Counted from the stretch's first letter, positions 2,534 through 25,671 are shown. The stretch: 64,000 bases of DNA from Laetmonice hystrix (GCA_965235115.1 OZ249451.1:16120001-16184000); one strand, 5' to 3'. Numbers and translations are program-made. Notes: a model not told the origin generated them from the letters alone.

Positions 2534-3264
2534 CTACTCCGGCACTGGCAACCTTTCGATGATCTGTTTCATAACTGCTGCTGCCGCCAACGCTGAATAC
2601 GGCTGCCAGTCGACATTCTTCGTGCCATCCAAATAATCAGCGATTCCACGGATAAATACAAAACTGTCTTTGCGGTTACCCACCACGGACTCCAACACCT
2701 GGTCGAATTCCGTGTCAAAGCAAACACAATTGTGTTTTGTAGCAAAATCCAGGCGTAACTGATCGTCACGCACGACTGGTTTCCCTGAGGCGACCGTTCC
2801 GAACCGCATCATGGGTCGTCCTGCCTTCATCTCCTCCCCAGTTCCTTCCGGAGCCGGCGGGTGCCCCACCTCAATGACGTCATTTCCTCCTATATTCATG
2901 AACAGCCGATCCGTGGATGCGTCAGGGCGGTCAAAGTTCACCTCCTGACCTTGAAGGAGGGCTTGACCTTGGGCTACAGCGTCCTCCCAAGGACAGAAGC
3001 TCGGGTTGGCGGTGAATTCGCTGAAGATTTCTGTGGCGATCCGCTGGATGACGAGGTCCTGTGGCGACCAGACTTTACGCATGTACTGAACCTTGCCCGC
3101 TTCGTCGTACTTGAGAGCGTCGCAGTAAATGTAAACATGCCCAGCGTCGTTTGGTGTCGACACGACTACGTCACCGAGACGGCCATGTTTGTAGTAGTCA
3201 GTGTAGTGAGGAACGCCACCGCCGACACCAACTAGGAACACGTGCTCCACATCACCAAACGTAC
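2534..3264 (-). CDS. Last coding exon of a winged-helix + nucleoside phosphorylase (PNP_UDP_1/MTAN-like) domain protein
   Basis: Acceptor ttatttcag|GTACG at 3265, phase 1, stop TAG at 2534. Encodes GTFGDVEHVFLVGVGGGVP..RLGDVVVS..GTVASG..CFDTE..FIRGIADY..WQPYSALAAAA, the PNP/MTAN-fold motif series. Confidence 0.93.
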
Positions 3265-3635
3265 CTGAAATAAAGTCAGCCAACGTGTTTACATCATACA
3301 CTGGGCACCAACGATTAAAATACACCAATTCATTGCTAATTCACTGCAAGAACGGAGCAAGAGCCAGTGGCTTATCAGTGGTCAAATCACCAGGCCCTCG
3401 ACACAGGATAAATGTAGACAGAATATTCCTAGATACAAGGCTTGTGATGTTACAAACACAAGATAAAGTTATCTAAAAAATCAGGTGAAGGCTTCCTTCC
3501 TTTTACCAAATTATATTACGTAAATCTAGAAAAACATGGATTAATCCTAACAGCAAGCTTTGAGGCTAGTATTATCTAGCCCTATATCTACTACTGTTAG
3601 TATTTCGGATTTTTTCGTTCCGTTCTCAAACTCAC

Positions 3636-3761
3636 CTAGGAGCCGTGTTGTTGTGTTACCAGATGAGATCTGTGCTGCCCTCTGGCGACCAATGACGGGA
3701 AGCTTGGTGCTGACAATCTTGTGACCTCCAATCTGACCAATGGTGTACACGTTCGACTCAC
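3636..3761 (-). CDS. Internal exon of the PNP-like gene (GESNVYTIGQIGGHKIVSTKLP...TTTRLL)
   Basis: Acceptor gattggttgtag| and donor |GTGAGT; 126 nt, phase 1-1, frame-compatible with both neighbours. Confidence 0.9.
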   Translation of the reverse strand: MSRTCTPLVRLEVTRLSAPSFPSLVARGQHRSHLVTQQHGS

Positions 3762-4063
3762 CTACAACCAATCACAGCGTTCAGGGCTCAATTCTTGTTC
3801 AACTTAAGATCTTGTATAAGCTTAAGCTGAAGGCCTGCTATTGGTTGGTCTGCTGCGACCAACCAGAAGAGTTAAGCTTAAGCTTAAGCTAGATTCATTG
3901 AAGTAAGGTAATACTTGTTCCCAACACATCACAAATACCAGGAACCAGTTTATATATTGTTATATATTAAGAGATCTTTACGTAGCACCAGTGGGCGGCT
4001 TTGGTGTGGACAATTTTTGATTTTTACTAGTGTTTCTCGTCTCCAACAATAAAACCATCTTAC

Positions 4064-4207
4064 CCTCAGTCTTGTAGCGTACAAATGTTGTCTTGTTGGC
4101 CATCATGGCATCCACAGCCAGTTTCTCGTAGTATTTCGACGTGATGATGGCAATGGTTGGCTTGTTGCTTCCCGTTTGCACTGGCATATTTTTGACGACC
4201 TTGACCT
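4064..4207 (-). CDS. Internal exon, start of the PNP domain (EVKVVKNMP...PTIAIITSKYYEKLAVDAMM...RYKTE)
   Basis: Acceptor tttcctcccacag| and donor |GTAAGA; 144 nt, phase 1-1. IAIIT..E matches PNP/MTAN strand 1. Confidence 0.9.
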
Positions 4208-5609
4208 CTGTGGGAGGAAACAAGGTTAGTGGGTCATGCAGGTCAGTAAAAGCAGGTCGAAGGTCAAAGGTCAACATACAGCTTTAGTGAGCTGAGCACT
4301 CCAAGTCAGGGTAAAGTGTATGTTGAGTCAGATTATGACAGCAACTAGACCAGCTGGAGTTTAGTTCACAAAGCCACCACTAGGAGACACCCCTAAGATA
4401 TGAAAGTACCCAGGCACGTTAACCCATCAGTCTATCTATGAAGGTCTGACTCAAAGACTCCGCCTTCTTTTCTCCTGAGATTACTTTTCAAAGCCTACAT
4501 AAGCAAGTTGAACATAGACTGATAGTTACTACTGCCCCATGACACACTATATTGTTTAGTTGTGTTTTCTAAACCTAAAATTTAGTTTTGTAGCATTCAA
4601 AGAGTATTACTAAACCAAGTACCCTCTAGCTATATTTTATTTAACAAGTTTATTTTTGATTAGACAAGACTGACTGACACTGGCGGCTCACAGTTGGAGA
4701 ACAGGCACAGCTGGCAGGATCATGAAAGTTTACAGAGTCGGCCATAGGAGGTAAATTGTTAATACTGAGAACTATTATTCTGAAAGGGTGTGGATTAGGG
4801 AGGGAGTATTTTGTGGGAACAGAAGCTGACGTCAGCAACGATTCTTAATGAAAACATGGCGACAAAAGTCAACTGGGGACAAAAAACTAGCAGTCACTCA
4901 ATCTCATTCTCTGTACTGCTTGGCAAATATTTCATAACATTATTGGCAAAAACGGGGTACAAAAAAACTCAAAAAATACACCAATTAAAGGCAATGTTAC
5001 AAAATGATAAATAAATACTTCTTTTAGTAGTGGTTTTCTGAGTTTCAAAAAGTAGGAGCATTTATACTGATTTTCTTTACAATTATAACAAGAGAATATT
5101 GTTTAAATCCATCACTTCACAATTACATGGATGTCGCACATTTACTGACAGAAATTAAACCTCTTTGTATACAAGGGCTTGTTAGTCCCAACTAGTTAGT
5201 CTACTTTATTTAGCTCAGACCTCTTGAACATGCATATGATATACAAAGAAGTCAACATTACTTCCAATTAGTAGACTTTTCTTTCACTGATAGTCATTCT
5301 AAAAACCTTTCCCAATATTATCATTATTAGCATTCAAACTCCATACTTCAGTTAGCTTTGTTTCATACTTATATTTTTCTGAGTTAGTATAGCAATAATA
5401 TTAGAATTCAGGTATTTTTTATTACGGGGCAGGGGAATACTTCTGCCAAGTTTAAACAATTCAAATAAAATACATTTGCAGATTTTACCCATGCCTCTGC
5501 TATCCACCTTTACATGGCCTGTATCCATGGCAACAACTATCGCCGAGTTCCAAAAAATACTGGATCTGCGCATTTGGTTGCCATGGTTACGGGCCGTTGC
5601 TATGCGTAC

Positions 5610-5728
5610 CTGTGTTGTCGTCAAGGACGCGTCGGACGAACCTGCCGGGCTCGACCTCGCGGATGAGGTCACGGCCCTGCAACATTCTCAGTTGTTCAGC
5701 GACCATACTCTCATCTGCGTTGGTCAGA
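5610..5728 (-). CDS. Internal exon, winged-helix-like segment (LTNADESMVAEQLRMLQGRDLIREVEPGRFVRR)
   Basis: Acceptor ttttcttgcag| and donor |GTACGC; 119 nt, phase 2-1. Helix followed by the L...G.I.EV..G.F.R wing pattern. Confidence 0.85.
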
Positions 5729-5979
5729 CTGCAAGAAAAAATAACAATAGAACGATGTCCTGGTTAATAAGGCCCAAAAAAAATAGTTTCGTTTCTTGTC
5801 CTTTCATATCAAAAAGTTGGTGCGGTGATGCGGTTTTTTTTATTTCTTTTTTTTGTGGATGCAACCAGACCAATGGCCGATTCTTCGAATGCAATTGGTT
5901 TTGGGGACATGAAGAAATCTGGAAGAAAAAACTAATGCAATGATGTTTTTAATGTTTTTGACAGTGGTTAGTCAGTTAC

Positions 5980-6088
5980 CTGGCCAGATCCTCCACCGGA
6001 AGAATGTTGGGGTAGGCCGACTCCAGGGTGTGAAGTACCTGCTCCTGTACGATCGCTTCCTTGGGTCTCGTGTCCTCCCGTGACATTC
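5980..6088 (-). CDS. Internal exon, winged-helix-like N-half (MSREDTRPKEAIVQEQVLHTLESAYPNILPVEDLA)
   Basis: Acceptor ttttttctccag| and donor |GTAACT; 109 nt, phase 1-2, joins the next exon in frame. Confidence 0.85.
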
Positions 6089-7507
6089 CTGGAGAAAAAA
6101 AAAACAACCGTTAGTGACATCTGGTGGTTGATTGGGATACTAGCAGATTATCATCACAAGGTCCCCCCCCCCCTCTTTCCCGGCTGGAGCCCCCCCCCCC
6201 CCCCGCGCCTGGAGAAACCATCCACCTCCCTCCTTAATCAAGACTTTTAACATGAAATATGACCTAACCTAAATATCAGGCTGTATACACTTCCCCCAAT
6301 TCCATATTTCCTAGGCTATGAACAAAACAGGTTACGCAATGCTTTTTATTGTAAAAAAAATATGGCAACCGTCTTCGATGGTGTTTTATTTTTGCATTGT
6401 AGAAAATATTGAACAATAATATAAGACCCCTTGATTGAAGAACTCGTAAAAGACATCTTGACAGTTTGTATAATGCCGGCTAGGTTTTCTTGGAGAGGGG
6501 GACAATAGCATACCAAGAAGAAAGTTCAAGTACCACCAAGAACCTCATTGCTACATTTCCTCAAATAATATTTCAAAGAACCCTCACACATGAGTTTGTA
6601 GATATCAACAGGGTATGTAAAGTGTTTTTGTAGAATAGTATGGAAAAATGTAACTTCATGCAGAACTCGTATAATATCAACATGTCGTCAAGAAAACTAA
6701 ACCAATAAAAAAATCCAAACCCTCATCCACCAACACACACACACTGCCTCTTCTATAAAAACCATCTGTGTCTAAAGAAACCAGCTCAAACACAACTCAA
6801 TATCATAACAACATCTACAAAGTAACTGTTCCGACTACGCATTTTAGTCCACTGTTTTACATTCTCAACTTAAATGCTAATATTAAATGGGCCTGAAGCC
6901 TAACTCGTCTACTGGCCCAATAACTGATACTAACTGTGTCTTAACTGAACAGTAAAACGTCATGTTAGTAAGTTCTCAATCTTCACTATCTGATAGGGAA
7001 AGGCCTGACGTTTTCGTGACAAATCTTTTCTAATAATTATACCCTCTGGAGTGCATCTAAAATGAGGTAAAATTAATATTAAAATTTTGTGGGTTAAATT
7101 GATTTTTGAAATCAGGTTTGAGTTATTTATGAATGTATTTATATTCCTGCCGTAACATTGCAAGGACGTTTATGAAATATTGTCTGAATATAATTCTGAA
7201 TTTAACTACAGTGTCAGTAAACTAACTTAAACTTATCATGGGTCAGATGATCTATGTTTGAACATCATGCATCAATCCAGTCTCACTACAACACACACAC
7301 ATCACCGATTAATCTACCAACTACAGAAAAAAAACAAAAACAAACACTATCCAGACGGAGAAATCCAGAGAAGTACAAAAAATAAAATCACGAAACACCA
7401 CTACCAGGGTCAGAGAAACCTTTATAATGGATGGTAACTCAGGATGGACAATAAACTCCAAATACGTTTCCATGCCAACCACTGGTCTGCAGCCAATCCT
7501 TACTTAC

Positions 7508-7528
7508 CCTCATCGTCGTAATTCATTG
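7508..7528 (-). CDS. Candidate 21-nt micro-exon (xMNYDDE)
   Basis: Long polypyrimidine tract tttgtttttccccttgtgttttcaccgtgtag| and consensus donor G|GTAAGT; phase 1-1, frame-preserving, no stop. Confidence 0.6.
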
Positions 7529-9121
7529 CTACACGGTGAAAACACAAGGGGAAAAACAAAAAATCTTGAATGAAAAATTTCATCCTGTATCTTTAAGATC
7601 TCGGTAACATGACATGATAGGAAATCTTTGCGATGAAAAGGTCCCTGAAATCTTGAGTCCCGGTGAAGTCCTCGTACTTTCCAGGGACTGTCCCAGTGGT
7701 GGATGCGACCTGTAATCAGGTACCTCCACTGCACCTTCGCACGCCTTACTAGGTAACTTGAGTATGCCATATTATTGATCAACTAGATATCATGCTTTTA
7801 CTAAACCTACTTCAGCTATCAATATCGATTTTCAGGCACGTTGCACTAAAGCGTAAGATCTGAGCTGCTCTCGCTATGTACTGTCTAGGAAGCTGAACTA
7901 ACATTTCCGTATTGGCTTTAATGAGTTAAAATGATACATATATATACAAACATATGTTTGTAAATCATGACATGACGAGAGATGGCGACAGGCAAGGTGA
8001 AAGTCACAACACCAATCATGCATGACGGGATATCGTTCAGCACTTCTCATTGTCACGTGACTACGTAACGTCATCAGTATTTTATAGATTCATTCCACGC
8101 TCTGTCCTTAGGGCATTTATCAAGCACAAGCAGATTCTATCAACTAGCAACTTTCTGGCGAGAAGGTCAAACTTTTAGTGATAAAAAAAACAAACATGAT
8201 TTTGTTCCTTATTTCTAGAATAAAGTGATGGGTTAAACTTAATACTAAACAACGCTTTGAAGCCAAACGTGCCTCCTGATGCAATTAAACACGAACTTAT
8301 TTTGTAAATCCACAAGGAATCCATAATCAAACTGGGGTTTGGGTTCTGAACCAATGGTTCAAAAGTTCATAAAGCAATAACACCAAGTTTAATCCCTCAA
8401 AATGGTGAATCCCTCATACTGAAAACCATTAGAAAAAGTGAAAACGCAACCAACAAAGTGTCACAGAAAAAGTCTTTGGGATTTGATGGGTCAATAGTCC
8501 CAAAGTAACACAAAACTGGGAGAAGTGAAAATGCTGGTTGGCGGGGGGGGGGGGGATATCGAGCTGAAAATTTAACTTGGTGACTAACCCCCAGCCCCGC
8601 AGGGCACTGTCAGGCAGCTTTTAAATGCTTCCACTGTCACTTCCTGCTCTAAACGTTCCGCTGAAAAAGAGGCTCAAAATACAGCGATTGCTGCTACCAC
8701 CTGGTGGCCACATCCGAAACGACCACCATCTGGCCAAAACATCCGGGGTCTTGGAATTTATAATTTCATAAGGGACCGTAGAACTGGGGAAATCAAACAA
8801 AATTATTCCTGGGGGTTGAATCTTGTGTTTAGATCTAATGAGGCAGCAACAAATAAATATTAAAAAAAAAAAAAAATAGCAGGTTAAACGTGCATGACTA
8901 CGCCAAACTAATGCAAGGGCTCAACCCTCCTAACAAACAAATAAAACAATCTTCAAACAACAGCATGCATTTGGAAATAACTGCTCCACCCGCCATCGGG
9001 TAAAACCAGTTATACCAAAACCCAGTTTACCAACAGCTTCACTACGAGTGTGTATACATCTATAAAACTCAGTGCAACCAGAGACATTAAGCTATGTTCC
9101 TCATTTGACGACCAAACTCAC

Positions 9122-9145
9122 CTGAAGCGTCTCTGAAATTGGCAT
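9122..9145 (-). CDS. Candidate 24-nt micro-exon (DANFRDAS)
   Basis: Acceptor gtgtctttgttctag| and consensus donor CAG|GTGAGT; phase 1-1, frame-preserving, no stop. Confidence 0.6.
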
Positions 9146-9804
9146 CTAGAACAAAGACACGTGAAGGACTAGGGTCAACAAGGGGGGTCACAAGCTAGCC
9201 ATTCATTAGCGTTCAGTGCTGCTAACTGTTAGTTATCTTACACGCAAGGTTGATGTCAACGCAGACAACTAGATACACACACCCAACTAAAATATCCACA
9301 ACGGATTACTTGATGCACGTGGTCAACCCAAATTTCATACGACACACATGGCCAGTGCAACAATATCAGGCAGTGTTGTATGAACACTTAAATAAAATCC
9401 CCGACAGGAATTTCACAATTGCAGAACATTCCCCAAATGTAGGCCGTCTTTTCCTTAGCTCTCGTTTTAAATATCCTTGCATATTGCTTATGTATTCATT
9501 CATAAATAGGGCGACTTAGGATATTGCTTTTGCATCACCTTATCTTAATTTAGGTTTAGTATACGCTGCTCAGGAATATAGTGTACACTGAATGTTATTT
9601 AGCAAAGATTAAAATTAAAGCTGAGACTTGATTTCTTAAAACTTAAAATGAAACATTAGGCTGACTTATATACAATGTGAATGACGAGTAAAACTCTTAC
9701 GATGAAGATAAATTAAATGTGGCAGTGTTCTGTGAAACCCTTACGATGAAGATAAATTAAATGTGGCAGTGTTCTGTGCCTGAGGATGGTAACTGAGTAC
9801 ATAC

Positions 9805-9927
9805 CAGGACTGGGGGCCGGGTTGTCTGCCTCCTCTAGTGTCGTCAGGTCTACGTCAACCTTCTTGATCTGGGAATACCGGGGTGCTTGGAGCTGTTTCA
9901 TTACTCGCTTGATAAAACCAACGTAAT
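9805..9927 (-). CDS. Internal exon (DYVGFIKRVMKQLQAPRYSQIKKVDVDLTTLEEADNPAPSP)
   Basis: Acceptor ttattgacag| and donor |GTATGT; 123 nt, phase 1-1. Confidence 0.85.
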
Positions 9928-10126
9928 CTGTCAATAATAAATAATATGACATAACATACCTGCAGAAAACAGTTGAGGAGTTCTAACACAGACATATTGT
10001 TTAAAACATTTTACCAGTTTAAAACTTTTAATTACATTGTTATTGGCTCTTGGGAAATACAATGCTATAATACAAATTATCAACTATTGAGAGCAAATTA
10101 ACGAAAGTCACAAACTTTGAAATTAC

Positions 10127-10238
10127 CTCGTGGGAAGTTGTCAGGTTTCACCAGCTCTCTGAAAAACTCATACGCTCCCGTTACCTTGTCCAGGTAGTCG
10201 GTGTCGGGAGCAAACCAAAACTTGAGCACTCGACTTTC
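10127..10238 (-). CDS. Internal exon (ESRVLKFWFAPDTDYLDKVTGAYEFFRELVKPDNFPR)
   Basis: Acceptor ttcttgttgacag| and donor |GTAATT; 112 nt, phase 0-1. Not in the ORF track; found by hand. Confidence 0.85.
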
Positions 10239-10700
10239 CTGTCAACAAGAAAATATTTCTGTTTTTAAATTAAATTCCATCAAGAAAATTGGTGAGATTT
10301 GTTTTCGCTGCAGTGGTCACTCTTGCGTTACAAAATTAGAACGTAGAACGAACTTCATGGCGATAGTGCGCACTGTTGGCAATAGGTGGCAGCACTGTCC
10401 TCTCCCGTCCCGCCAAGTGTTGCGAGCAGACGACACAAACTCTCCATTGTACATGCACAGACATGAATAATAGCCTTACAAAAAATTCACATGACAACAA
10501 CCTCGACTTAAAAAAACTCTTTTTGTTCATGACAGGTGAAGCATGTCTTAGCTAGTACTACAAAAAAGTAACTTGGAATACATGCCGTACACTGTTACAG
10601 ATCAAAAAAAGTCTAGAGAAAACTGAGCACGACTTTTACATTATGATTCAGTAAAAGTTGTCATAATCATAATTTTGTCAAGCTGGAGTCTTTAACTTAC

Positions 10701-10786
10701 GGGAATGTGTTTGCCAGTCTTGTTGTCGACAAGGAAACATTTAAACTCCAGTTGTAACTGTGGTTGTTTGTCCAGGTCAGAGTCCC
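10701..10786 (-). CDS. Internal exon (GDSDLDKQPQLQLEFKCFLVDNKTGKHIP)
   Basis: Acceptor gtttgtgtttgtag| and donor |GTAAGT; 86 nt, phase 1-0, exactly bridging the phases of the flanking exons. Confidence 0.85.
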
Positions 10787-12816
10787 CTACAAACACAAAC
10801 ATGCAAACTTCTAAATATTGTCAAAAGTGTTATTTTATAAAGGTGAACTAATGACCTTTCAAACCAAAAGGCTTTTATAACCCAGTGGTCTTTATGGTTT
10901 CCTGACTGAGAGTTTTAATCTCAAGTGTTATAAATTATAAATTATCTTGGCAGCTTGTCAGAAGAAAGGTTTTGGTGGGGTGAGTACTTGTCAAGATATT
11001 GTCCTTTCTGAAACTCTATCTCAAAAATATATCATGTTACTGAACTTCTTAAATATATGAGGATAGCTTCAGCCTAGTTAGAGAATCTCTGTGGGTTAGA
11101 TTCCAAGTACGATGTAAATCCTGTATCCCGATTGTGGCAGTTAAAACAATCAATATGAAGCGGCTCAGGCCTGTGGTCTGTACCATTTAAAGCTAGGCCA
11201 GGCATAAAAACAGAGTAATATAACCAAAATATTTTCACGAAGAGTAGGGAACTAGGTTACCTTCCTAACCATCAATAATGGACGGAATCAGTTGAAATAC
11301 TCTATAATATTTAATCTCGCACAGAAGATAACTACAAAATACCAACAGCTACCACCAATCACTCAATGTTTTTAGGCAGGTGGCCAGGACCAACTGACCA
11401 AACTGTACCTGGGGGTGTGAGTGAAGCTAATTATACGAGGCCAAGTTGGGGGTCTGAGGTTGAGATCACCGACCCTACCGCCATCTGTCGTCATTCCCAG
11501 ACATTAATCACTTACTACGTCACAGATTACCATATACAAACAGATTGGAAACGGCCATAGTAATGACGTGAAACAAAGATGGCGTCACAATTCAGTGATT
11601 TGTCAGTGGCGACACCATGCGTCGGAGGAGATAAACTAAACGCCCTCCATAGGAAAAGCATGGCGTGACAGGTTTAGGACAACATATCTGACAAATGACC
11701 TGCATTTGGTGGCAGGCGTAAAAAAATACGGTACTCGGATGCCTAGGGAAGCCATATTTTCCCGGTAGGCTACCAACCTATGTCCAAAATGGGACTGAGG
11801 ACGTTCCCAGCCGGGCTCATGCATAACTTGCCACAGGCGCATTGTAGTTTATCTCACCATTCGCCAGGTGTCACTAGTGGTCACGGGCGCAAACCGGAAG
11901 TTTCAAATCGGCCTATCTCGTTTCCAATCTGTTTGTGTATGCTAATCTGTGACTACGTGAACATTTCCCTGTCCACTGTCCTTACCAACGGACCCGAGGG
12001 CAGACTGGGAGAGGGAGTCAGTCATGAAAACAATACACTTAGACATTTTCTAAGGGCTAAGACGAGGACTTAAGACTTAAGTCAGGTTTGGATACATAGT
12101 TTCTTGGTCTCACAAAGAAAATGGTCGACAATTATAGGAAAGAAATGGAAAATATGTGGTTTCTCTGGCTTAGAATTACAAGAGGTAAAATGGAGGATAC
12201 TTGACCAAATGGAAATTATCTTGCTTTCCTAGTTTATGCTCTCTGCACATGTATATTTATCATCCATTTTTAAAAAAAACTACGATCAGTGCTTGTCATG
12301 ATGAACTGCCGACAGAAGTTCATGACCTCAATACGTATGTCTGGTCCGCTGACCTCCTTGACCTTCACGTTGGAGTAGACCTCAGCCTGCTGCGTTAAAA
12401 GGTGCTCCCCTGGTAACTGTTTGTCAATGACAGGTCAGAGGTCAAGGTCAAAGGTCACATACCGACAGACCTCCCCTGGACACTTAGAGTATACAGTGGT
12501 GTATCACTATAGACCCCCTGCTGAAGACAAGCGTATCGCATGTGTTGGTGGTGTGGGGACCACCCGATAGAGGGCACTAGTAGTAACTGAAGTCAATCTC
12601 AGCTGAATTGTTCTGGTTCAGCAAAACTGGGCAAGATCGATTTTGAAAGGATGTTAAAACTGCAAACTGCCTGGGTACTTTTTGATGATCCTTCTTTCCA
12701 TCTGACAAACTTAATGACGTCGCGATCCCGTGAAGATTTCTTGAACTGTCATTTGTTCAATGTACCACTTCACAAAGAATGAACAAAGAACAAACAAAGA
12801 ATGAAGCTAGTCTTAC

Positions 12817-12966
12817 CTTGTATTTGTTTGTTGATGACGAGTCCCCTGTTCGCCCCACCTCCCTGATGTTCGACCTTGGTGTCATCGATGTTAGTTTTGG
12901 GAACCTTCTCTATCTTGATGCACGTTGTCCGACCTTTCTTTGTCGGCGTCATTACAATCTTCTCAT
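12817..12966 (-). CDS. Internal exon (DEKIVMTPTKKGRTTCIKIEKVPKTNIDDTKVEHQGGGANRGLVINKQIQ)
   Basis: Acceptor tacttttgttacag| and donor |GTAAGA; 150 nt, phase 1-1. Confidence 0.8.
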
Positions 12967-13700: not shown

Positions 13701-15290
13701 TGTACAACCTCTGCTACCTAGGGCAGATGTCAGCAGATGTCAGAGGTATGACCTGATAGCTGTACAACCTCTGCTACCTAGGGCAGATGTCAGAGGTATG
13801 ACCTGACAGGTGTACAACCTCTGCTACCTAGGGCAGATGTCAGAGTGATGACCTGACAGGTGTACAACCTCTGCTACCTAGGGCAGATGTCAGGGTCAGC
13901 ACCTGACAGCTGTACAACCTCTGCTACCTAGGGCAGATGTCAGGGTCAGCACCTGACAGCTGTACAACCTCTGCTACCTAGGGCAGATGTCAGGGTCAGC
14001 ACCTGACAGCTGTACAACCTCTGCTACCTAGGGCAGATGTCAGGGTCAGCACCTGACAGCTGTACAACCTCTGCTACCTAGGGCAGATGTCAGGGTCAGC
14101 ACCTGACAGCTGTACAACCTCTGCTACCTAGGGCAGATGTCAGGGTCAGCACCTGACAGCTGTACAACCTCTGCTACCTAGGGCAGATGTCAGGGTCAGC
14201 ACCTGACAGCTGTACAACCTCTGCTACCTAGGGCAGATGTCAGGGTCAGCACCTGACAGCTGTACAACCTCTGCTACCTAGGGCAGATGTCAGAGTCAGC
14301 ACCTGACAGCTGTACAACCTCTGCTACCTAGGGCAGATGTCAGAGTCACGATCTGACAGCTGTACAACCTCTGCTACCTAGGGCAGATGTCAGGGTCAGC
14401 ACCTGACAGCTGTACAACCTCTGCTACCTAGGGCAGATGTCAGGGTCAGCACCTGACAGCTGTACAACCTCTGCTACCTAGGGCAGATGTCAGGGTCAGC
14501 ACCTGACAGCTGTACAACCTCTGCTACCTAGGGCAGATGTCAGGGTCAGCACCTGACAGCTGTACAACCTCTGCTACCTAGGGCAGATGTCAGGGTCAGC
14601 ACCTGACAGCTGTACAACCTCTGCTACCTAGGGCAGATGTCAGAGTCAGCACCTGACAGCTGTACAACCTCTGCTACCTAGGGCAGATGTCAGAGTCACG
14701 ATCTGACAGCTGTACAACCTCTGCTACCTAGGGCAGATGTCAGGGTCAGCACCTGACAGCTGTACAACCTCTGCTACCTAGGGCAGATGTCAGGGTCAGC
14801 ACCTGACAGCTGTACAACCTCTGCTACCTAGGGCAGATGTCAGGGTCAGCACCTGACAGCTGTACAACCTCTGCTACCTAGGGCAGATGTCAGGGTCAGC
14901 ACCTGACAGCTGTACAACCTCTGCTACCTAGGGCAGATGTCAGAGTCAGCACCTGACAGCTGTACAACCTCTGCTACCTAGGGCAGATGTCAGAGTCAGC
15001 ACCTGACAGCTGTACAACCTCTGCTACCTAGGGCAGATGTCAGAGTCAGCACCTGACAGGTGTACAACCTCTGCTACCTAGGGCAGATGTCAGAGTCACG
15101 ACCTGACAGCTGTACAACCTCTGCTAGGGCAGATGTCAGAGGCATGACCTGACAGCTGTACAACCTCTGCTACCTAGGGCAGATGTCAGAGCCAGGACCT
15201 GACAGCTGTACACCCTCTGGTAAGGCAGATGTCAGTCATGACATGACAGAATGTACACTCTCTGGGATGTCAGATGTCAGAGTCACGATC
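13701..15290. repeat. 50-bp minisatellite, ~31 copies (tgtacaacctctgctacctagggcagatgtcagggtcagcacctgacagc)
   Basis: Direct reading; exact 50-bp period from 13761, degenerate units at both ends; intronic. Confidence 0.97.
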
Positions 15291-18200
15291 GACAATTACA
15301 AGGTGTGGTTGTGACATTGGATCATGGAACATACACTTTTACTCGTTTTACTCTGGATCACTTCCACTTGGCTCTTCCAAAGAATAGTTTGCCTACTTTC
15401 ACTTTTTATTTGCCATGAAGTGTGTCATATATCACCAACTCTAACAACTTCTCTCCTCCTTGACACCGTCTCTCACAGCCAGACAGCCACACACTCACAG
15501 CCCAGCCGGGCAGAGTTCAATATGTCCACTCAAACATCTCAGCAATCACAGCAAGTCCGAAGTCAACTCAACACCCAACACTGGGTGAGCTATAACAGCA
15601 ATTGTTATAACTGTGGCAGACTTGTGGAACCTGTGACTGTCTCAGTTGTCAAAGTTCTATATTAACACACGTAGCGACCCTGATCCAATCCCCCCGCAAT
15701 GACCACCCCATCATCTGGCGGCCGGTGACATCCATTCACTCTGAGATATACGATGTTTACATAGGCCGCACCCAATCAGAGATTGGCGATCCCATCACAA
15801 CCTAACCCCTCACACATCCTAGTAACGACTTGATTTCCTCCTGCAGACAGCCACTCTCCCAGCCGAGGGGAGAAGCAATCAGTGTTACTTGAAGAATCTC
15901 CCAGACGAGGATCGTGTTTCTATAGTTACGTTTTACACGTGTTCCCGGCTGTCAGCACGCACGTGTATGACTCAGTACACGGCGGGTCGTGGGTAGGTGG
16001 GTGTTGGGATGCTGGGAGTTCCCAGACACCGTCATCATCACCACCACCCCCATTAGTCCACACCGTTACCATGGTAACAAAAAATCCCTACCCTCAACCG
16101 GACACATCTCTGAAAACGGCATTGTGTTTGACAAAACTTCACAATCCATGATACAACAATTATCGTTTTTTTCAGTACCCGTACCAATGCCGACGGTCGC
16201 CGATACATGAGGGTGAATTTCTATCCCGACCATATCCATGATAATGACAGCAAGGTTGTCATGAATACCATACAATATCAAACTGACTGGGCGCTGGGAT
16301 TTCCCCAGGTGATTGTCTTAAAGTCATCTTCTCCTCCTATTCACTGTTCCGGGGAAAACCCACATCTGAGACCGCCGTTACCATAGTAACCAGGAGGCAG
16401 GGACACTGAAAACCCAGTCGTGTAGCACCTGTCTCTGGTATGTCCCTGCCAAATTCACCACAACTTTCCTCTTTTTTGAGAGTATGTTGTATACATTTTG
16501 ACAGCGGTCCCGGCCATAAGAATGATCAGTAAATGTCATGTCTATTAGCTACAGAGCAGCCAATAGTTATTTAAATCGAGTGCATTTTTTCATGTACATA
16601 CACGTTCAAAGTATTGAAACCATTTCGTGAAAAACTTCTCCGTTTGACAAGATCAATGACTCTACTTTATAAACTTACTCTATAATAACACTTTGCAAAT
16701 CTGAGCTGAGCTAAAAGAAACTGCATAAAAGGAAGAACTAAGTGACCCGTGGTTAATGATCGTGCAGCGCCGGAGAATGAAGTCGGGACTTTCTCTGAAT
16801 GTAGTTCTCTTGGTGCTGCTCTGTGTTTTTTCCCAACTTCACCTCTTATTACTCTGGGAAATAATACATTAATATTGTTTTACACCAGGTTACCCGAGCT
16901 GGCAGAGTCTTCAAAATCAAGATCCTTTAGATTAGAGCACTTTTTTGTGATTTAAAATGAAAGTCTGCACATAAGTGGTCTTATTGGCTTCAGACTCCCT
17001 GGACCAGTGGTAAATAAAAAATTACTTTAGTTTGTGTGCCCCTAGTAACACAAGCTGGTAGAGTTTCAAAAGTTTCAAACGGAAAAATTAATGACAGCAA
17101 CATCGTATTGATTAAAGCAGATTTTTCAATTTTATTTATTTTTTTAGTGATTAATGAAATCCTGCATCCATTAAAAAACACTGGTCTCTGATGCTAAATG
17201 TTACTCTCTAAAAAAACAGTAATCCATCCATTTATTCATTCCTCATGAATTCCGAAGTCTCATGCATGGCTAAGTTACTATCCAGTCAAATCCAGTGCCA
17301 GGGTTTCCAGTATAACCCCTCCAGGCATTCTATTAACCCCCTGTGTACTACCTTTATCTCCATGGAGTCCCCCTATATCTAGACAAAGACGCACCCCCTC
17401 CTGTCACACCTGTGTTCAGGCAGTGATGACTCAGATAGTCTCTCTTTGATCCACCCTCACCTGTCTTTGTCTACAGATCACAGTACCAATCCCTCCTTGA
17501 GATCTCTCACCCAGACACCCCAGGTACACCTGCACTTATATACACTGCAGATCGGCTGGATACTAGATCCTAAGTGGTTTCATTTAGGGCCGTACCAATA
17601 CTCGACCCAGCCAGTGCCACTGGGGCATGGCCGGTCTGGCCACCTACTGGTGAACTTAGGTAACAAACAATGTCTGATCACTCGGTGGTCTACAGGGTCG
17701 CAGCCCTCGGAAACTGAAAGGAGCTCAAAAAACGGAGTCGGTATTTTGTGCTAATTGGCCTTCAGAAGTAGGCTACAACGAAAACCACTTCCCGGTCCTG
17801 GGCAAGTCAACCCCGCAGGATATTTCTACATACATGTCGTTTTTTTCGTAATGACAGAGGGCTTTGCTGGGGAACTTCAAGGGGTACATATATTTCAATG
17901 AACCTTAACCTTTCTCGGACTCAAGCTGGTCTCAAGGGGACCGTGGATGTGACGCCTCCCGAGGAGCGAATCTATGGTCACAGTGACCGATTGCAGGCCA
18001 CTCACGATCATCTGTCACCGATCTGTGGATCACCAGCAGGTCTTTGTGTGTTCTGATCCCCCCCGGGTAGAAATCCATCCCTCATGTCAGTACGGCACTC
18101 CTGGCGACACCTTGACTCAGTAAACACCGAGTCGTGCACACCTGGGGCCATGCTGGATTCGCTTCTTTTTTCATATTGCCATATTTCAAAGGATCATTTT

Positions 18201-18856
18201 TTTCTGGGCAGTCTGACAACAGACCTTTCACAGCATGCTGCAGATGTAGCACCATGTACCGGATCCTTTTTTTGTGGAGGAATGGGGATAATTTCAGTGA
18301 GGTTTTCACCTGAGAGCTTCGATTTCCAGTCCAGTGTGAAACTACCATAAACACACAAAACACCCCCACCTCGTTTAATCACCCCTACCCCAAGCCCCGG
18401 ATGTCAAACAGAGGGGTGACTCACACCTGTGGTCACTGACCCAAGACTGACACCAACAGAACACCAGGTCAACAACCCCACCTGACCCAATCCCCTATAG
18501 AACCATCTCAATGTGACCACCCACCCATCCTCGTGTCACTGTGACCCCTGGCCATACCTACCCCACCTTCAGCCACTCTGAGGTCACCAGACTGCTCTAT
18601 CAATAACCAATCTTGAGTTGAACTAAACTTAGAGAAACCTTCACTTGGGCCACACCGGCTAGACATACACAAGGGTCACTGACAGGCCACAAAGGGTGAT
18701 ATTCAAAGGTTCTAACTAGGCATTTCTGTGACCTTGACCTCCTCATCAAAGGTCATCAAAGGTCAAACGTTCAAGATGTTCCTGTCTCATTTCTTTAACT
18801 TGTCGCAATCTGATTTATGGCAGAAATGTATACCGGTACTTCACTTTTTCCGGACA

Positions 18857-19135
18857 TGGAATTTCAACAAGGTTACTGTCAACTTTCCAGCTTTCGCCCC
18901 ATGGAAATGCAACAACTGTCAGTCACCTTTCCAACATGGGCCCCATGGAAATTCAACAAAGTTCTGTCAGTCACCTTTCCATCATTCGACCCATGGAAAT
19001 TCAATAACTGTCAATCACCTTTCCAACATGGGCCCCATGGAAATTCAACAACTGTCAGTCACCTTTCCAACATGGGCCCCATGAAAATTCAACAGGAGTC
19101 TATCACTGCCCGTCACCTTTTCCAACACTCGCCCC
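18857..19135. repeat. ~44-bp degenerate tandem repeat, ~6 copies
   Basis: Unit atggaaattcaacaactgtcagtcacctttccaacatgggcccc; accounts for the repetitive ORFs 18728-19320. Confidence 0.85.
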
Positions 19136-19799
19136 GGTTCAACATGAACATGAGATGGAGCCGAGGCAAGTGTGACTACCCTCACCCCTATGTCATCAAG
19201 TCACGACTAACATGCTTCCATGACCGTCCCAATCCTGAATTACATGTTACAAAGCATGTGATTGCCCTTGTAATAGGTCACTTGTCTTATTACCCGTACA
19301 CAATCCGCCCCCAAACCTGAACAAACTGTACATTTTCTGTATTTATACCACAAATATTCTACTGTGTCCTCACAATAGAATTGCTAAGAACAGGAGACTA
19401 GGTCCTGACAGAGGACAGCCTGTTTCAGACAGTGCTGGGCGGGGCATGAAGTCGTAGGACGTCCATTCTACTCCCACTAGTATCATGGTTATTGTGGCCT
19501 AGATGATTCTCTATGATCCGAAAACATTGCCCTGACCTGTTGCGGTTTGCCCCACTTTTTATGCTGGATGGGAGGCATTGTCAGCGACACCGCACCCCCA
19601 GCACATGGCTATATGCTGACAACATGTGGTGGTCGGGTTGGCACGGCCCTGGCACAGCCATTCACAACTTGGTGGGAGTGCGGGGAGGGGTCCGGGTGGG
19701 GGGTGCCAACCCCCGGCCAGGGCTCAAAACACGACAAGGAGATAAGTAATCTACTACCGCTCACAAGCTCCTCTACTGGTTGCCATGGCAATGAGAAGC

Positions 19800-21190
19800 T
19801 CATCTTCCCACTGCTATCCCATTCTTATCATACTCGTCTTCCACGTGAATCCCAATAAATGCCTGGGCAGTCAGACATGTGGTCATAATGACAAGGACTG
19901 ACCGAGCCAGAGCCCTTACAATCACGTTTCCTTCACTTTCTCTGCAGTCCTCAATTGAACAAGTCACCTGACACTCTCTCGGGTTAATCAAGCAAGAGTT
20001 TAATTTTTCCCGTTTTGGAAGTTTTACTGGGCCTTTTCTTCATTAAAATCCACATTCAAAAGCGATTGACAGAAAGTGATGCGACAAGACTAACACTCAG
20101 TCGAGGGTTATACAGGTGTAGGAGAGGTAGAGGTAAGTGCCATCAACTGAAACCTACAATGCTAAATATCTGATAGTAAACGCCACCTTTTCCGCGCGAA
20201 CTAACTTTTGTAAAGTTCTTTTATTATTCAATGAATGAACTTCAAATAGAAAACACATGAGTCAATTTTCGAGAGTCATGGTGCTATGTTTTAAATCTTT
20301 GTCAAAAGATAGCTTGGATCCCGGAACCTTCTTCTAGATCAGATTCAAGATAGACCTCCGAGAAAATTACACCAAGACCAGACACTTCACGGACAAACTG
20401 GACAGGAAGGTTTTTATCCTGCCAACCTGCAGCACTTAGAAACCAAACAATTCCCCTGTACGGGGTACTGGCAACCGTAGTACCTACCTGAGCAAGGTAA
20501 ACATACTCTGGGAAAACTCTTTTAGTTCTGACAACCAATGTTTGCACAGTCATCACCCTATCATAAAACTGAAATAGAAATAACGAAATGACACTTTAAT
20601 AACACCCATAATCCTTTAAGTCTGGACTTGCCCACAGGGCATGTTTTGTCTTGGTGAGTTTAAACACAGCCGATGAGGAACACCAACCTATCTTCTGAGA
20701 GTCGAGACGGATGACATGGGAACTTTGACCCACTGACCTAGACTCTGGTGGGTCCAAGCTCCCTGCCCTATTTCCATTTGATCCGTCTGTGAATTCCTGA
20801 ACATTTTGCTGGATAACTTCTTCCTAGCTATCATATGACCATGAATGATAAGGATCTCAAATATACAATTAGTATAATTTTTATACAAATTTGCATGCTG
20901 CCAAAAAGCTAAAGTTACTTTTGCCTGATGTTGGAAATTCTTCTGAGACAGAACGTAACCATCTCAGGGGGTTCACTTTTATAGAACTTTTTTTTATAGA
21001 AGATTATTCATCCGGAAAATAATTTTAAGTAAGTGAATTTTGGTGAAATCGTATTCAAGCAACCAGTTTTTCAATGTGTTGGTTGAAGGAAGTTGGTTGA
21101 GATACGGTTTAATCTGTCCCATGCTCGGATCCCACTGAAGGTCTTTCAAGAGAGTTCCAGCCGACACTGATACAGTCTCTGGTTTATCCT
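19800..21190 (-). mobile_element. Possible decayed ISL2EU/Harbinger-type DDE transposase remnant
   Basis: Broken frames give VASTPYRGIVWFLSAAGWQDKNLPVQFVREVSG (recalled ISL2EU pattern: ACTPNGAISFLS.A.GGR.SD..IVRESG), YLNQLPSTNTLKNWLLEY and FIGIHVE (RIHVE). Resemblance from memory only; no TIRs found. Confidence 0.35.
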
Positions 21191-21536
21191 ACCCCTAAAC
21201 CACAACACTTCATTACACAAGACTTTACTTCATGATACCAGTCTGCTTGGTCCATCCACCTCTAGTACCACCTGTGTGACGATTGGCTCATCCAATCAAT
21301 AAACAACCAATCAATACTATCAGAAGTGTCCCCAGGAAATGGGTCAGATCGTGCCACACCCCTTCCCTTCTCTGTGTCTGCAGGAAACAGGCCACCCCCG
21401 CACCGCCCACCCCACCCTTCACCCCCAACCCGACATCCCCCCCCCCAATCCTTCTCTGCCCTTCATACCTGGCCAAGCCAATGTAAACCACACAATCAAT
21501 ACCATCTTGGCGACCTTGACTTGAGGTCATGCCATT

Positions 21537-21689
21537 ATGCCATCAGCGGTCTGCCACCCTCCCTACTCCATGTCAAGTCCTGTAGTGTCACCTGGTTCTG
21601 AAACCTGCACTGATGCCATCAGCGGTCTGCCACCCTCCCTACTCCATGTCAAGTCCTGTAGTGTCACCTGGTTCTGAAACCTGCACTGA
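21537..21689. repeat. 76-bp direct tandem duplication
   Basis: Two identical copies starting at 21537 and 21613. Confidence 0.95.
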
Positions 21690-24600
21690 CAACATCCACC
21701 TACAAGATCACCGACCTCAATTAATGGTAGGCAGGAAATCTGGTCCTGACCGATCTGTCCGACTGTTGAACGCTACCTGTCTGAGGTAACGGTCTGGTAT
21801 GTGTTAGATTGATATGGTGGCCAGAACAACCAGAGCCAGGCGGCTTTCAGACAGTAAGCCAGGCCAGCAGGCAGCCTTCCCTCAGCCAGGCGCCTTTGAA
21901 CCAGGCGCAGCCCAATCAGAACATTGTACCATAAGTCTCCCATGGTAAAAACCACTATCACAATTAGCCTAAGCATACTTTAGAACAGGCTGCTAATTAA
22001 TTACCCCATGACATTTGGCTGTGATGGAAGTACCGGTAGGTCATTTAGCAAAACATCTGATGCTTGTTTAAAACAAGATCAAAGAGACTGACTCTGCCAC
22101 CGACAGCCAGCTGTAGGCCACAGAATGGAGAGATTGACCGGGGACTCCGGTAACCTGCAGCAAGCCACTATCTACGGGAATGATCACTTGAAATATATAT
22201 AAAAAAATATAGTCAACGAATTATCTCCATTCTGTCTTTGCAATTTTGGGCTATCGTAGGACACATGCCCTCAAAGTACATGTATAATGTAGAATAATTT
22301 AGCGTCTTGCTTTTAGTACATAATATTGCTCAGGAAGTAGCTTCAATGTTTCATACGCGGTACCATGATGCCAGTGTGAGCACTATTTAAAAACGAAATG
22401 ATGTAATGACCGCAGACTGGGGTACCATAAATGTATGTGTTATGGTACGGTAATACGGCCTTGTACACAACATGTATGTGCTGGGTACAAGGGGATTATA
22501 CCATGGAGATTATCTACTGATTACCTCTGGCAATATCGACCACATCTACCGGCCACAGACGGGAGATTTATACGCTTTGCCTACAGGTACAAACATACCA
22601 GGCAGTACTACAACATGACTAGCATCATAATTTAATGGATTATTATTAGATCTTGCAAAGGCTGAATTTGCTGTATACTTTTCTGAAAACGAAAGCACGG
22701 CCTTGCACTTGTAGTAACAATGGCGTCATCTTTTGTGGCACCCCCACTTCCCCCCCCCCCCCGTACAGTTTTATACCAACCCCAGCGACCAAATCCCCAC
22801 TCTCCGACAAACCATCAACCCACACTGCCGCTACCAACCACTGTTTGACAACCACTCCACGAGCCCCACCAGCTTCCACAGTGCTCTTAGAATTTCGTGT
22901 TTTCGTAAGATCATTTGAATCTTTTCATGAAACTTCGGAGACTGTTTGAAAGACGTGCCCAGGCTGGGTGCGGATGCGTGGGTGCCCCCCCCTCCCCACC
23001 CCCAGACAGCACAGGGCACCGGGTGCAATATTTGATACCAATCCCATTCCCCTGTCAGATTTATGCACGTGCTGGTATTTATAACCCCACCACACGCGCC
23101 CATGTTTGCGAACAGAACACAACGCTCTGCTGAACGCCATGACAATACCTTAGATCATCAAAAAACACCGGAACAAAACGGATCATATTCAGTGCATGTC
23201 CCAGGGTACCATTCTCCTAAACGAGGGGGACTAATGACCCATCCCTAGACAACTTGCCGGGAATATTGACGACCCCTTCCTACTTCCTGATGCTGTCTGA
23301 TAACAATTCCTAAACACACATGTAATCCGTTGTCTGGTACAACATTCCCTCATCCCCTCGCCCCGCCAGCCGGCCAGTTCTATGGTAGTTGGAACCACAA
23401 GCCAACAAACCCCCAGTCGGCTTGCACAGCACCCCCCCCCCCCCCCCTAAACGGCACAACAAATAGTTTCATGTTTCACATCTCCCTCAATTTAGTTGTC
23501 ATATTGACGGGCTGCATGCATATCTCTCCCTCGATCTCTGCCTATAAACACCCACATCAAAGCAGCGTTCCCAGTCTCAGCTCTACAAAAAAAATATACT
23601 TACATATTGTGTGATGAGAGGGTTCTGTGCCAGTATTGACAACATTTCTCCAAATTGATGGATAATTGATCTTTAGAGCATGGGTTCTACCTCTGCTGTC
23701 AGAATAAATTTGGTCAAACACTCAAAATATGAACGTTTAAGGATCCGATTCCCAGACTTGGGTTGAGCGATATGCCTGGTTTCAAAGTGAGTTTGGGCAA
23801 TGGCTATGGGACGTTACCATCATCCACTTTACATTCTGACATTTGTACTGAAGTTCTGACAAAATATTGGTGTGTACACACAATGTCAAAGTATATTTGA
23901 TGGCTTCCAATAAAATGAGTCCGGGTTAACTCATTATTGTGCCAGTTATTCCCATGATGACAAAAACCATCTGTTTCTATGACAACAAAGTAGCAGGGGG
24001 GCATCTAAGTTAATTATATGATCTTTGTGACAACAGGTCACGACAAAACCAGCTTTGATGAATGAGTATTTAATGAGTTATACCAGTGAGACAAATCTCG
24101 ACTAGTATAACATTAGTGACTAAAATTTATGTGAGACTGAGTCAGAAACAACGGTGAGTCATACCTACATGTTTTCATTTAACTCACTTTAAATGGTACT
24201 CTATGACTCTAACTTCATGATCAAATAAAACGGAACTCTTAGTACCGATTCCACCACATCTGAAACTGGAACTAGGACTCCCCACCAGTTTTACCTATTT
24301 CTGTAAAATCCTGGTTGGTGTTGAGAGTCAGAAAGAAGTTACGACTGCGTTCTTTCACTGAGTTGTACCCTCACTCATCGCCCATGACAGCAATGTGAGT
24401 GGGACCCAAGCACATGGCATGTGTGTGGCGGGGGTGGGGTGGGAGGCTTGGGAAACAGGGTGTTGGGTTGGAGCAACGAGTATAGAATACTCGTTGGTTG
24501 GAGAGACTGGAATATGGAGATGATAGTAGGGTGTTTAGCGAAGGGCATGCTCTTCACCGCTGAAGATATACACATGCCTGGTTTTCTGACCTCAAAGATT

Positions 24601-25655
24601 ACAGAAAACAACATCAGAATCCATGACGTGGATAGGGTGGTGTGGTTTGTGGTACCGATATTAACATGACGTAGGGTACGGTAAACACCCCTACATTCCT
24701 ACCCCTCCCCAATAACCACCCTGTGTAGTTACGGCTATGTAACACCCCTGATTAATTACCCCTGTGTGTTTTCAGTACCACTGCCCTGTCCCTACATGCC
24801 CCCTGCCCAGCCAACCCCCACCACCACCAGATCCACACACCCCTACGATCTGACCCTAAGATCTGACCCAGGTCTGACCATCCCAACTGTACCTACCGGG
24901 GTATTCATTCATCACCCCCGCCCCCACACAACAGGTGTTAGTCCAGCTGGCCACTGGCTGACACTGACCACCGCATTGCCATGGCAACATGAGATTAAGG
25001 GTGGCGGTGGTATTTTAGATATTATCTTGACCAGATACCTGACTGGCCTGGTGGGGTCTGATCACCCGGGCAGATTCCACAATCTGTACAAACCACACAA
25101 CTACATACATACATACATATATATATGTAGGTGAATTGCCAGAAGGATTCAAAGGTCGGTCAGCACGCTAAGTAGGTGGCTCCACACATGTAAATGAATG
25201 ATGCAGGGCACATCGCAGACATGAACAGGAGAAAATATCCAAATCGCTGAAACTTATGATTCTGTGGCCAAAGGTAGAAAAAACTCAAAAATTGGACACA
25301 AATTTAGTGCTTTTTTTTGTGGCATTTCAATCTAAAAAAGGGAACTCCGCGAATCTGCAGAAAATGTTCATATCAGCATGGATCCCATAAAGATGATATG
25401 GAAGTACCGCCTTACAAACGCCTATCCTCTCCGCCCGTCGTCTAAAAACATCCCCCACCAAACCAGATCTTTACATCCAGAACATCTGAATTCACCCTTC
25501 TACAGAAAGTTTCACCCTTACCCTTATATAAATATTAAACACCTGCCCTCAGCTTCATGCTGAATACCTCCCCTGACACCTATCAACATGAGAACCCTTC
25601 CCGCCCCTACCCCTGACTGTACCTGATCCCAGCGCCTATCACAGTCATATCTTAC

Positions 25656-25671
25656 CTGCTGGTTCCGCCAT
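25656..25671 (-). CDS. Candidate first coding exon (MAEPA) of the PNP-like gene
   Basis: caagATGGCGGAACCAGCAG|GTAAGA: strong Kozak/YY1-like context, consensus donor, phase 1 matching exon 12817-12966, CpG-rich surroundings. Implies a 12.7-kb intron. Confidence 0.6.

Follow-up and report, generated by a model that had tools for sequence, protein, structure and literature searches.

A transcript-supported annelid gene for a pan-protostome protein that joins a winged helix to a nucleosidase-like domain of the Cap17/NLR type

The 64,000-nucleotide (nt) stretch of the Laetmonice hystrix genome analyzed here (GCA_965235115.1 OZ249451.1:16120001-16184000; the window, whose full length defines all coordinates below) carries, on its minus strand and reading from 25671 to 2534, an expressed gene of 11-12 exons for a cytosolic-type protein of 579 or 586 amino acids (aa). 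The product is the annelid-type ortholog of a pan-protostome family that combines the winged-helix domain HTH_69 with a nucleosidase fold of the PNP_UDP_1 superfamily (PNP domain) and includes Drosophila melanogaster CG12065 and Caenorhabditis elegans H14E04.2. It consists of four parts: a basic N-terminal alpha/beta domain (residues ~6-152), an acidic linker, a winged helix (~180-243) and the nucleosidase (~250-579). We lean, with some reserve, towards a reading in which this protein is a regulated N-glycosidase that releases adenine from an adenine nucleotide and is gated by its two N-terminal modules. The idea of an ATP-cleaving effector is already in print as speculation (Rousset et al., bioRxiv 10.1101/2023.01.24.525353) and is hence not new; the locus is an ordinary conserved gene, a further member of a known family whose function in animals is uncharacterized. 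What we add is a transcript-supported annelid gene model and evidence of linker variation by micro-exons.

The gene model combines several lines of evidence (Table 1). A listing of open reading frames, together with inspection of the sequence, gave a long terminal coding block and, upstream of it, short blocks bordered by AG/GT, and tblastn with four full-length ortholog proteins located nine exons in the window. With a 16-nt ATG exon these make ten GT-AG exons in a frame of 571 aa, whose product is collinear end to end with orthologs of 561-583 aa, no block missing. Addition of the micro-exons 9145-9122 and 7528-7508, the pair that ranked first for acidity when two extra exons were enumerated, yields 12 exons, 1761 nt and 586 aa with one terminal stop. 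This is exactly the model of the original prediction, which had been made from the DNA alone and which could be rebuilt without change. The order it gave to the parts, with an N-terminal domain, an acidic linker, a winged helix and a PNP fold, is also correct. The putative exon 1 lies outside the stretch covered by reads and is supported only by a GT donor, by its reading frame and by an N-terminus that resembles those of orthologs, for example MAEAT in the ortholog P0223.

Splicing was read from four public runs (X1-X4) of one sample, none of them labeled as RNA, whose contigs were compared over positions 4050-10000. A 727-nt contig of run X4 (record 25) joins 9805|9145, 9122|6088, 5980|5728 and 5610|4207; all four joints are flanked by CT..AC, as expected for GT..AG introns of the minus strand, and the loose end of the contig (at 4062) runs on into the exon that begins at 3761. 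In the genomic-type runs X1-X3 the introns are covered and none of the X4 joints is present, and a six-frame search of the whole assembly returned intron-containing copies only. The X4 contig therefore derives from spliced RNA, as opposed to a retrocopy. The isoform that it represents, with micro-exon 9145-9122 but without 7528-7508, has 11 exons and encodes 579 aa. Five junctions are confirmed in this way, four by the joints and one by the loose end; 7528-7508 is either an alternative exon or unused. The short acidic linker is alternatively spliced and varied by micro-exons.

The closest relatives of the window protein are annelid: identity is 68% to Capitella, 66% to Paralvinella and 62% to Helobdella, over 562-584 alignment columns with no block missing, followed by 56-58% to molluscs and ~50% to chelicerates. 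When the last exon was compared by phmmer with 1.84 billion representative proteins, 4279 relatives were recovered, many of them 560-600 aa long and matched at their C-terminus. A search with a cephalopod ortholog returned more than 1000 proteins with PF22979 (HTH_69), with or without PF01048, almost all named 'uncharacterized' or 'Winged helix-turn-helix domain-containing protein'. The three domains are collinear from end to end with those of orthologs of ~560-600 aa, and insect, chelicerate and nematode sequences, alignable over their whole length, show the same order of N-terminal domain, HTH_69 and PNP domain. Named members come from molluscs, annelids, nemerteans, brachiopods, bryozoans, arthropods, tardigrades, priapulids, nematodes, nematomorphs, flatworms and a seisonid rotifer; among the relatives named, none is from a deuterostome or a cnidarian. 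The original prediction had pointed to a conserved invertebrate family of CG12065-like proteins. That family is real, and CG12065 is named as a member by Rousset et al. (2023); the probable orthology to CG12065 is drawn from their statement and from the insect members that we retrieved.

Two further loci that combine this N-terminal domain with PNP exons occur in the assembly (627 Mb, 35 contigs), which also contains two separate housekeeping PF01048 genes. The paralogs lie at G000:C4:30877464-30887712 (L001/L002) and G000:C2:35016924-35035720 (L003/L004). At the site of FDTEFD the first of them reads YVQEFD and the second IDPGFQ, and the latter therefore has no equivalent of the catalytic Glu174 discussed below. 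The PNP match of this second paralog is interrupted once, by an in-frame stop or by an intron.

What is known of the enzyme branch comes from bacteria, fungi and sponges. Cap17 and DtcC cleave ATP and dATP at the N-glycosidic bond and lose function on the substitutions D472A and D353A, respectively; sponge and fungal PNP domains of the Cap17 clade cleave the same nucleotides in vitro, and the members of the branch that were tested are specific for ATP/dATP and toxic when expressed (10.1101/2023.01.24.525353). The same study placed arthropod and nematode proteins, CG12065 and H14E04.2 among them, in the Cap17 clade, described them as carrying a Zalpha-like domain and speculated that they degrade (d)ATP upon sensing foreign nucleic acid. 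No functional test of the animal family was found in the literature; H14E04.2 is mentioned in two C. elegans papers whose subject is alternative splicing and its regulation.

The assignment of the window PNP domain to this branch is drawn from orthologs and profile searches and not from a Pfam scan of the window, in which the PNP exons had no match and the sole match among the exon pieces was a sub-threshold HTH_69. The last exon matches the PADLOC CBASS PN-effector model (E 2.9e-6, profile positions 412-497 of 506), and its Atlas features indicate PNP_UDP_1 clusters. With a family profile built from 59 PNP domains, scores of 1e-40 to 1e-69 across the entire domain are reached both by fungal NLR-type domains (fused to NB-ARC, NACHT, TPR or Ank) and by metagenomic proteins that match the PADLOC CBASS PN-effector model. 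Escherichia coli MtnN is matched in part only, at 9e-5, and DeoD, Udp and Amn are unscored. In a maximum-likelihood tree of 38 domains, in which PADLOC-positive proteins stand in for Cap17 and DtcC and a single enzyme represents the methylthioadenosine/S-adenosylhomocysteine (MTA/SAH) nucleosidases (MTANs), the family is monophyletic (100/100) with a stem of 1.41 changes per column; family and NLR-type domains join at a fork that is not resolved, outside which MtnN, DeoD, Udp and Amn of E. coli sit on long branches. The alignment shows two insertions, VPH..KHxRLGD and PWE..RP..TDRL, and a C-terminal motif, SDYxDG..WQxYAAxxAAA, that are common to the family and the NLR-type domains and absent from MtnN. 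The domain is also long, at ~330 aa against the compact ~230 aa expected of MTANs, and the one MTAN compared falls outside the clade. By these sequence comparisons the PNP domain belongs to the Cap17/NLR-type branch of the superfamily. Tandem arrangements of two or three PNP-type domains, some with NB-ARC, are frequent among relatives outside the family (P0098, P0113, P0122, P0110, P0097, P0067, P0120); those with a species name (P0122, P0110, P0067) are fungal.

The catalytic residues, read from the alignment only, are largely kept. The equivalent of MTAN Glu12 is present in 59/59 members and that of Asp197 in 58/58, while the equivalents of Arg193 and Glu174 are found in 55/59 and 46/59, respectively. 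In the window protein these are E274 (Glu12), E522 (Glu174), R542 (Arg193) and D546 (Asp197, within IRGIADY), and D546 also corresponds to the aspartates of Cap17 (D472) and DtcC (D353). The last exon further carries RLGDVVVS at 365, PWE at 428, TDRL at 454, DTE at 520-522 and WQPY at 556. The original prediction had taken RLGDVVVS as a signature of effector domains; the motif is not diagnostic on its own, E. coli MtnN having KVGDIVVS in its place. From its sequence the PNP domain is very probably a hydrolase, and its substrate cannot be taken for granted.

We consider it a possible, if rather less probable, alternative that the protein does not deplete ATP as an effector and is instead a constitutively active nucleosidase with a housekeeping or regulatory task, whose substrate would be a nucleoside or small metabolite (MTA/SAH-like, a modified adenosine or a signaling nucleotide), with the N-terminal domain and the winged helix serving oligomerization, localization or partner binding. 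The high conservation across phyla, the low-copy orthology and the three old paralogs of the same architecture fit such an enzyme. When the family profile was run against the PDB, only MTA/SAH nucleosidases were matched (best E 3.6e-5, over the last third of the domain) and no solved Cap17-type structure appeared; the catalytic Glu, Arg and Asp of these nearest solved structures match. The motif at the ribose and 5'-group, EME in MTANs and NLR-type domains, reads D(T/S)E in the family, which suggests a pocket unlike both, and the depth of the X4 contig, 34, points to ordinary expression, the sample being apparently untreated. The sequence features of the domain argue the other way: all three NLR/Cap17-type insertions and motifs are present and MTAN-specific features are not, the profile scores favor the NLR/Cap17-type branch by more than 35 orders of magnitude, housekeeping PF01048 genes exist separately in the genome, and the tested branch members are specific for ATP/dATP and toxic. 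The original prediction that this is not a housekeeping salvage enzyme accords with the profile scores, the tree and the motifs.

The second module, encoded between 5610 and 6088, had been predicted to be a winged helix, and the assignment held. One half-domain exon of the window matches HTH_69 at E 9.6e-5 and 22.7 bits, below the 27-bit cut-off because an intron splits the domain; 59/59 aligned orthologs match it, with a best E of 4.5e-29, and the AlphaFold model of ortholog residues 1-249 has a pLDDT of 89.7. Ortholog residues 173-240 superpose best on Zalpha domains, with ZBP1 at Z 11.7 (VIA; root-mean-square deviation 1.9, 64 residues). ZBP1, PKZ and ADAR1 Zalpha are the best PDB matches, with Foldseek TM scores by target of 0.84-0.93; the next Z is 10.7, and other winged helices, protein-binding ones such as Rpa2 and the cullin WHB included, follow ~1-2 Z units behind.

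These superpositions bear on the proposal of Rousset et al. (2023) that the protein is a Zalpha-type sensor-effector, in which the winged helix, on binding nucleic acid that is left-handed or foreign, would switch on ATP cleavage. In addition to the fold, a wing aromatic (F/W/Y in 54/59), a wing Arg (58/59) and basic residues at three further positions are in keeping with it. The residues that should read the nucleic acid are not. The established helix-3 contacts of Zalpha domains are, in ADAR1, K169, K170, N173, R174 and Y177. With the register fixed on the hydrophobic core and on the Gly after helix 3, the matching columns are, in order, Glu (39/59), Glu/Ala, variable, Glu and variable. Helix 3 keeps its buried residues, whereas its exposed face is variable or acidic; across the family the mean net charge is -1.6 for helix 3 and -3.6 for the whole domain, which has an isoelectric point (pI) of 5.0 in the window protein. 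Conservation is highest in LESAYPN, at the end of helix 1 and away from helix 3, and at one wing Arg. The Pfam z-alpha model is absent from the 25 families most often matched by the 59 members and from 11 full member hit lists at E up to 1-10, and generic winged helices score nearly as high. Binding of Z-DNA or DNA in the canonical manner is doubtful because the domain is acidic and has no Zalpha DNA-contact residues, and we regard the Zalpha-type sensor as improbable. 

The winged helix may instead pack on the enzyme. A two-chain prediction of this domain with the PNP domain gave an ipSAE of 0.50, the best of 3 controls reaching 0.08, with a contact agreement between runs of at least 85% and a partner pLDDT of at least 80. 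The mark used for docking is reached by 51/78 solved complexes and 2/108 mismatched pairs, and among the passing cases a score of 0.60 or less is seen for only 5 of the 78 solved complexes and for all 4 mismatches that passed. The support for docking is thus weak. We infer that the winged helix is an adaptor or regulatory module and not a Z-DNA reader. The second option of the original prediction, a nucleoside-sensing DNA-binding regulator, can be put as a non-catalytic transcription regulator in which the PNP fold senses a nucleoside and the winged helix binds promoter DNA. The fusion of a winged helix to a ligand-binding fold is an arrangement known in bacterial regulators, and some members have weak matches to MarR, IclR and Rrf2 helix-turn-helix models; the catalytic Glu, Arg and Asp are, however, near-invariant across phyla, the recognition helix of the acidic domain has an unconserved exposed face, and no nuclear localization feature or second DNA-binding module was seen. 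Such a regulator is very improbable and is disfavored.

The N-terminal domain is a family-restricted module. Folded alone, its ~150 aa give a very confident model (pLDDT 92, pTM 0.86) with two beta hairpins followed by a beta-beta-alpha-alpha-beta unit; the domain is basic (pI 9.1 in the window protein) and has no Pfam model. Searches of the PDB (Foldseek and VIA alignment), of AlphaFold DB clusters and of the ESM Atlas gave nothing at Z of 8 or more, or at E of 0.001 or less, outside the family. Ribosomal eS1 gives the highest PDB score, Z 6.0, ahead of T-fold enzymes at Z 4-5; the latter matches are weak and recurrent (DHNA 5.0, urate oxidase 4.8, PTPS 4.6), and all lie below the value of 8 that serves as the noise guide of the tool. 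In the AlphaFold DB clusters and the ESM Atlas, family members are followed by T-fold enzymes (FolE2, FolB) at TM scores by query of 0.47-0.48. A death effector domain (DED) was considered for this region and rejected: weak DED matches occur in 13/59 members (best E 0.0012; 13.7 bits in Limulus against a cut-off of 35.9) and are spurious, the residues concerned (72-134) being beta strands in the confident model. The N-terminal domain also occupies residues 233-391 of an AlphaFold DB entry named 'DED domain-containing protein', which may be a fused gene model.

Insertions of several kinds are found between this domain and the winged helix. The nemertean Tubulanus protein P0013 has a farnesoic-acid O-methyltransferase domain there (PF12248, E 2.7e-27), AlphaFold DB entry V4BP35, named after that domain, has the N-terminal domain at 4-155 of 736 aa, and octopus isoforms contain a proline-rich acidic insert of ~110 aa. 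Neither the methyltransferase cassette nor the octopus insert was found in the introns of the window. Exon insertion seems to be concentrated in the linker.

Based on the above data, we propose that the nucleosidase would act on ATP/dATP, the best guess by analogy with tested relatives, and that the N-terminal domain and the winged helix would gate it. The winged helix would be an adaptor packed on the catalytic domain, as opposed to a classical reader of DNA or Z-DNA, and the N-terminal domain the likelier sensor of a ligand or partner. Gene structure, splicing, domain identities, clade and conserved residues are established by the data above, whereas the substrate, the gating and any immune or stress role are inferred. 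In a more specific version, which we hold to be unlikely, the basic N-terminal domain would be a new sensor of a ligand or nucleic acid, perhaps derived from a purine-binding T-fold, and would switch on the adenine-nucleotide N-glycosidase through the docked acidic winged helix, the trigger being something other than Z-nucleic acid. In that case protostomes would possess, in one chain, a conserved switch for nucleotide depletion that is analogous to bacterial CBASS-Cap17 or Detocs.

Several observations weigh against the gated adenine-nucleotide N-glycosidase that we prefer. Its ATP specificity is borrowed from relatives across the long stem branch (1.41 changes per column), in a tree that includes no bona fide Cap17 or DtcC. 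There is no positive evidence for any trigger: the acidic winged helix without Zalpha contacts gives no support to the published Z-nucleic-acid idea, and its predicted docking on the PNP domain is weakly supported. At the altered D(T/S)E motif (D520-T521-E522 in the window protein) the final position is occupied by Glu in 46, by Asp in 5 and by Gly in 4 of the 59 members; nematode sequences are among those with Gly, which one paralog of this genome has as well, and the substrate or the activity may therefore differ. Finally, strong conservation at low copy (~57% identity between annelid and cephalopod, ~50% to chelicerates) is more in line with a core cellular enzyme than with an immune sensor that evolves fast. 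If a triggered ATP/dATP nucleosidase were nevertheless correct, a bacterial-type abortive-infection effector would have been kept almost unchanged across all protostome phyla. Fly and worm orthologs are ready for genetics, and the questions for experiment are sharper than before: the winged helix is unlikely to read Z-DNA, the N-terminal domain is unexplained, and the pocket motif is unlike that of the tested ATP nucleosidases.

Repeats occur in and around the gene. The intron between 6088-5980 and 5728-5610 contains, at 5770-5950, a short and very highly repeated element, probably SINE- or MITE-like, at which the summed contig depth rises from ~50 to ~50,000 (bin 5642-5840) and many contigs break or join. 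The first intron (12.7 kb) holds a 50-bp minisatellite of ~30 copies with 96% matches and two smaller tandem arrays.

Table 1. Positions of the coding exons and tandem arrays in the window.
Feature	Position	Strand	Content and evidence
Exon 1, coding part (putative)	25656..25671	-	ATG at 25671; residues 1-6, MAEPA+; GT donor, in frame with exon 2
Exon 2	12817..12966	-	Residues 6-56, start of N-terminal domain; tblastn E 6.5e-12; AG/GT boundaries
Exon 3	10701..10786	-	Residues 56-84, N-terminal domain; tblastn; AG/GT boundaries
Exon 4	10127..10238	-	Residues 85-122, N-terminal domain (FWF..FFRELV..FPR); tblastn E 9e-11; AG/GT
Exon 5	9805..9927	-	Residues 122-163, end of N-terminal domain (DYVGFIK..) and start of linker; tblastn; in X4 spliced contig
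Micro-exon 6	9122..9145	-	24 nt, DANFRDAS, residues 163-171, linker; both joints in X4 contig; AG/GT
Optional micro-exon	7508..7528	-	21 nt, AMNYDDE; AG acceptor, GTAAGT donor, in frame; skipped in X4 contig
Winged-helix exon, first half	5980..6088	-	Residues 171-207, LESAYPN at 192-198; Pfam HTH_69 E 9.6e-5; tblastn; contig joints
Winged-helix exon, second half	5610..5728	-	Residues 207-247: helix 3 at 212-226, wing, R239; tblastn; joints
PNP start exon	4064..4207	-	Residues 247-295; E274 aligned with MTAN Glu12; tblastn E 2.5e-15; MtnN alignment
PNP exon	3636..3761	-	Residues 295-337; STKLP..SSGNTTTRLLG; tblastn E 9e-17
Last exon, PNP	2534..3264	-	Residues 337-579, stop 2534-2536; tblastn E 7.6e-80
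First-intron tandem arrays	13733-15219, 18855-19094, 21537-21689		
Large tandem arrays upstream of gene	26300-27398, 30130-32762, 34789-36910, 50601-52523, 58509-60454		Periods 126, 146/298, 81, 36, 26 bp

Among known systems, the proteins with Zalpha and Cap17-like PNP domains of Rousset et al. (CG12065/Q8MRM6, H14E04.2/H2L0A5 and Apis A0A7M7MVF0) are of the same family and domain order; the window member differs from them in being annelid-type and in its micro-exon variants of the linker. Those authors do not describe the N-terminal domain, and their Zalpha reading is not supported here by the residues. The Zalpha domains of ZBP1, ADAR1, PKZ and E3L have the winged-helix topology of the window domain and superpose on it most closely (Z 11.7; TM by target up to 0.93), whereas the window domain is acidic and not basic, does not conserve the Asn, Tyr and Lys contacts of helix 3 and is unmatched by Pfam z-alpha. 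MtnN/Pfs (PDB 1JYS, 6PO4), the nearest solved structure by sequence (E 3.6e-5), has in common with the window protein the equivalents of Glu12, Glu174, Arg193 and Asp197 and the GD(I/V)VVS strand; it is ~100 aa shorter, has none of the three insertions and motifs, lies outside the clade and is matched by the profile over the last third only. Cap17 (CBASS), DtcC (Detocs), sponge DDAN and fungal NLRN are, by profile scores, insertions and motifs, of the same PNP_UDP_1 branch, and like them the window protein keeps the equivalent of the catalytic Asp and carries its effector domain at the end of a multidomain chain. The sensors differ: those systems use TPALS/SLOG, receiver, NB-ARC or Death domains, and the window protein has an orphan N-terminal domain together with its winged helix. 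The window family is set apart as well by the change of EME to D(T/S)E, by its long stem branch and by a distribution that is highly conserved and not patchy.

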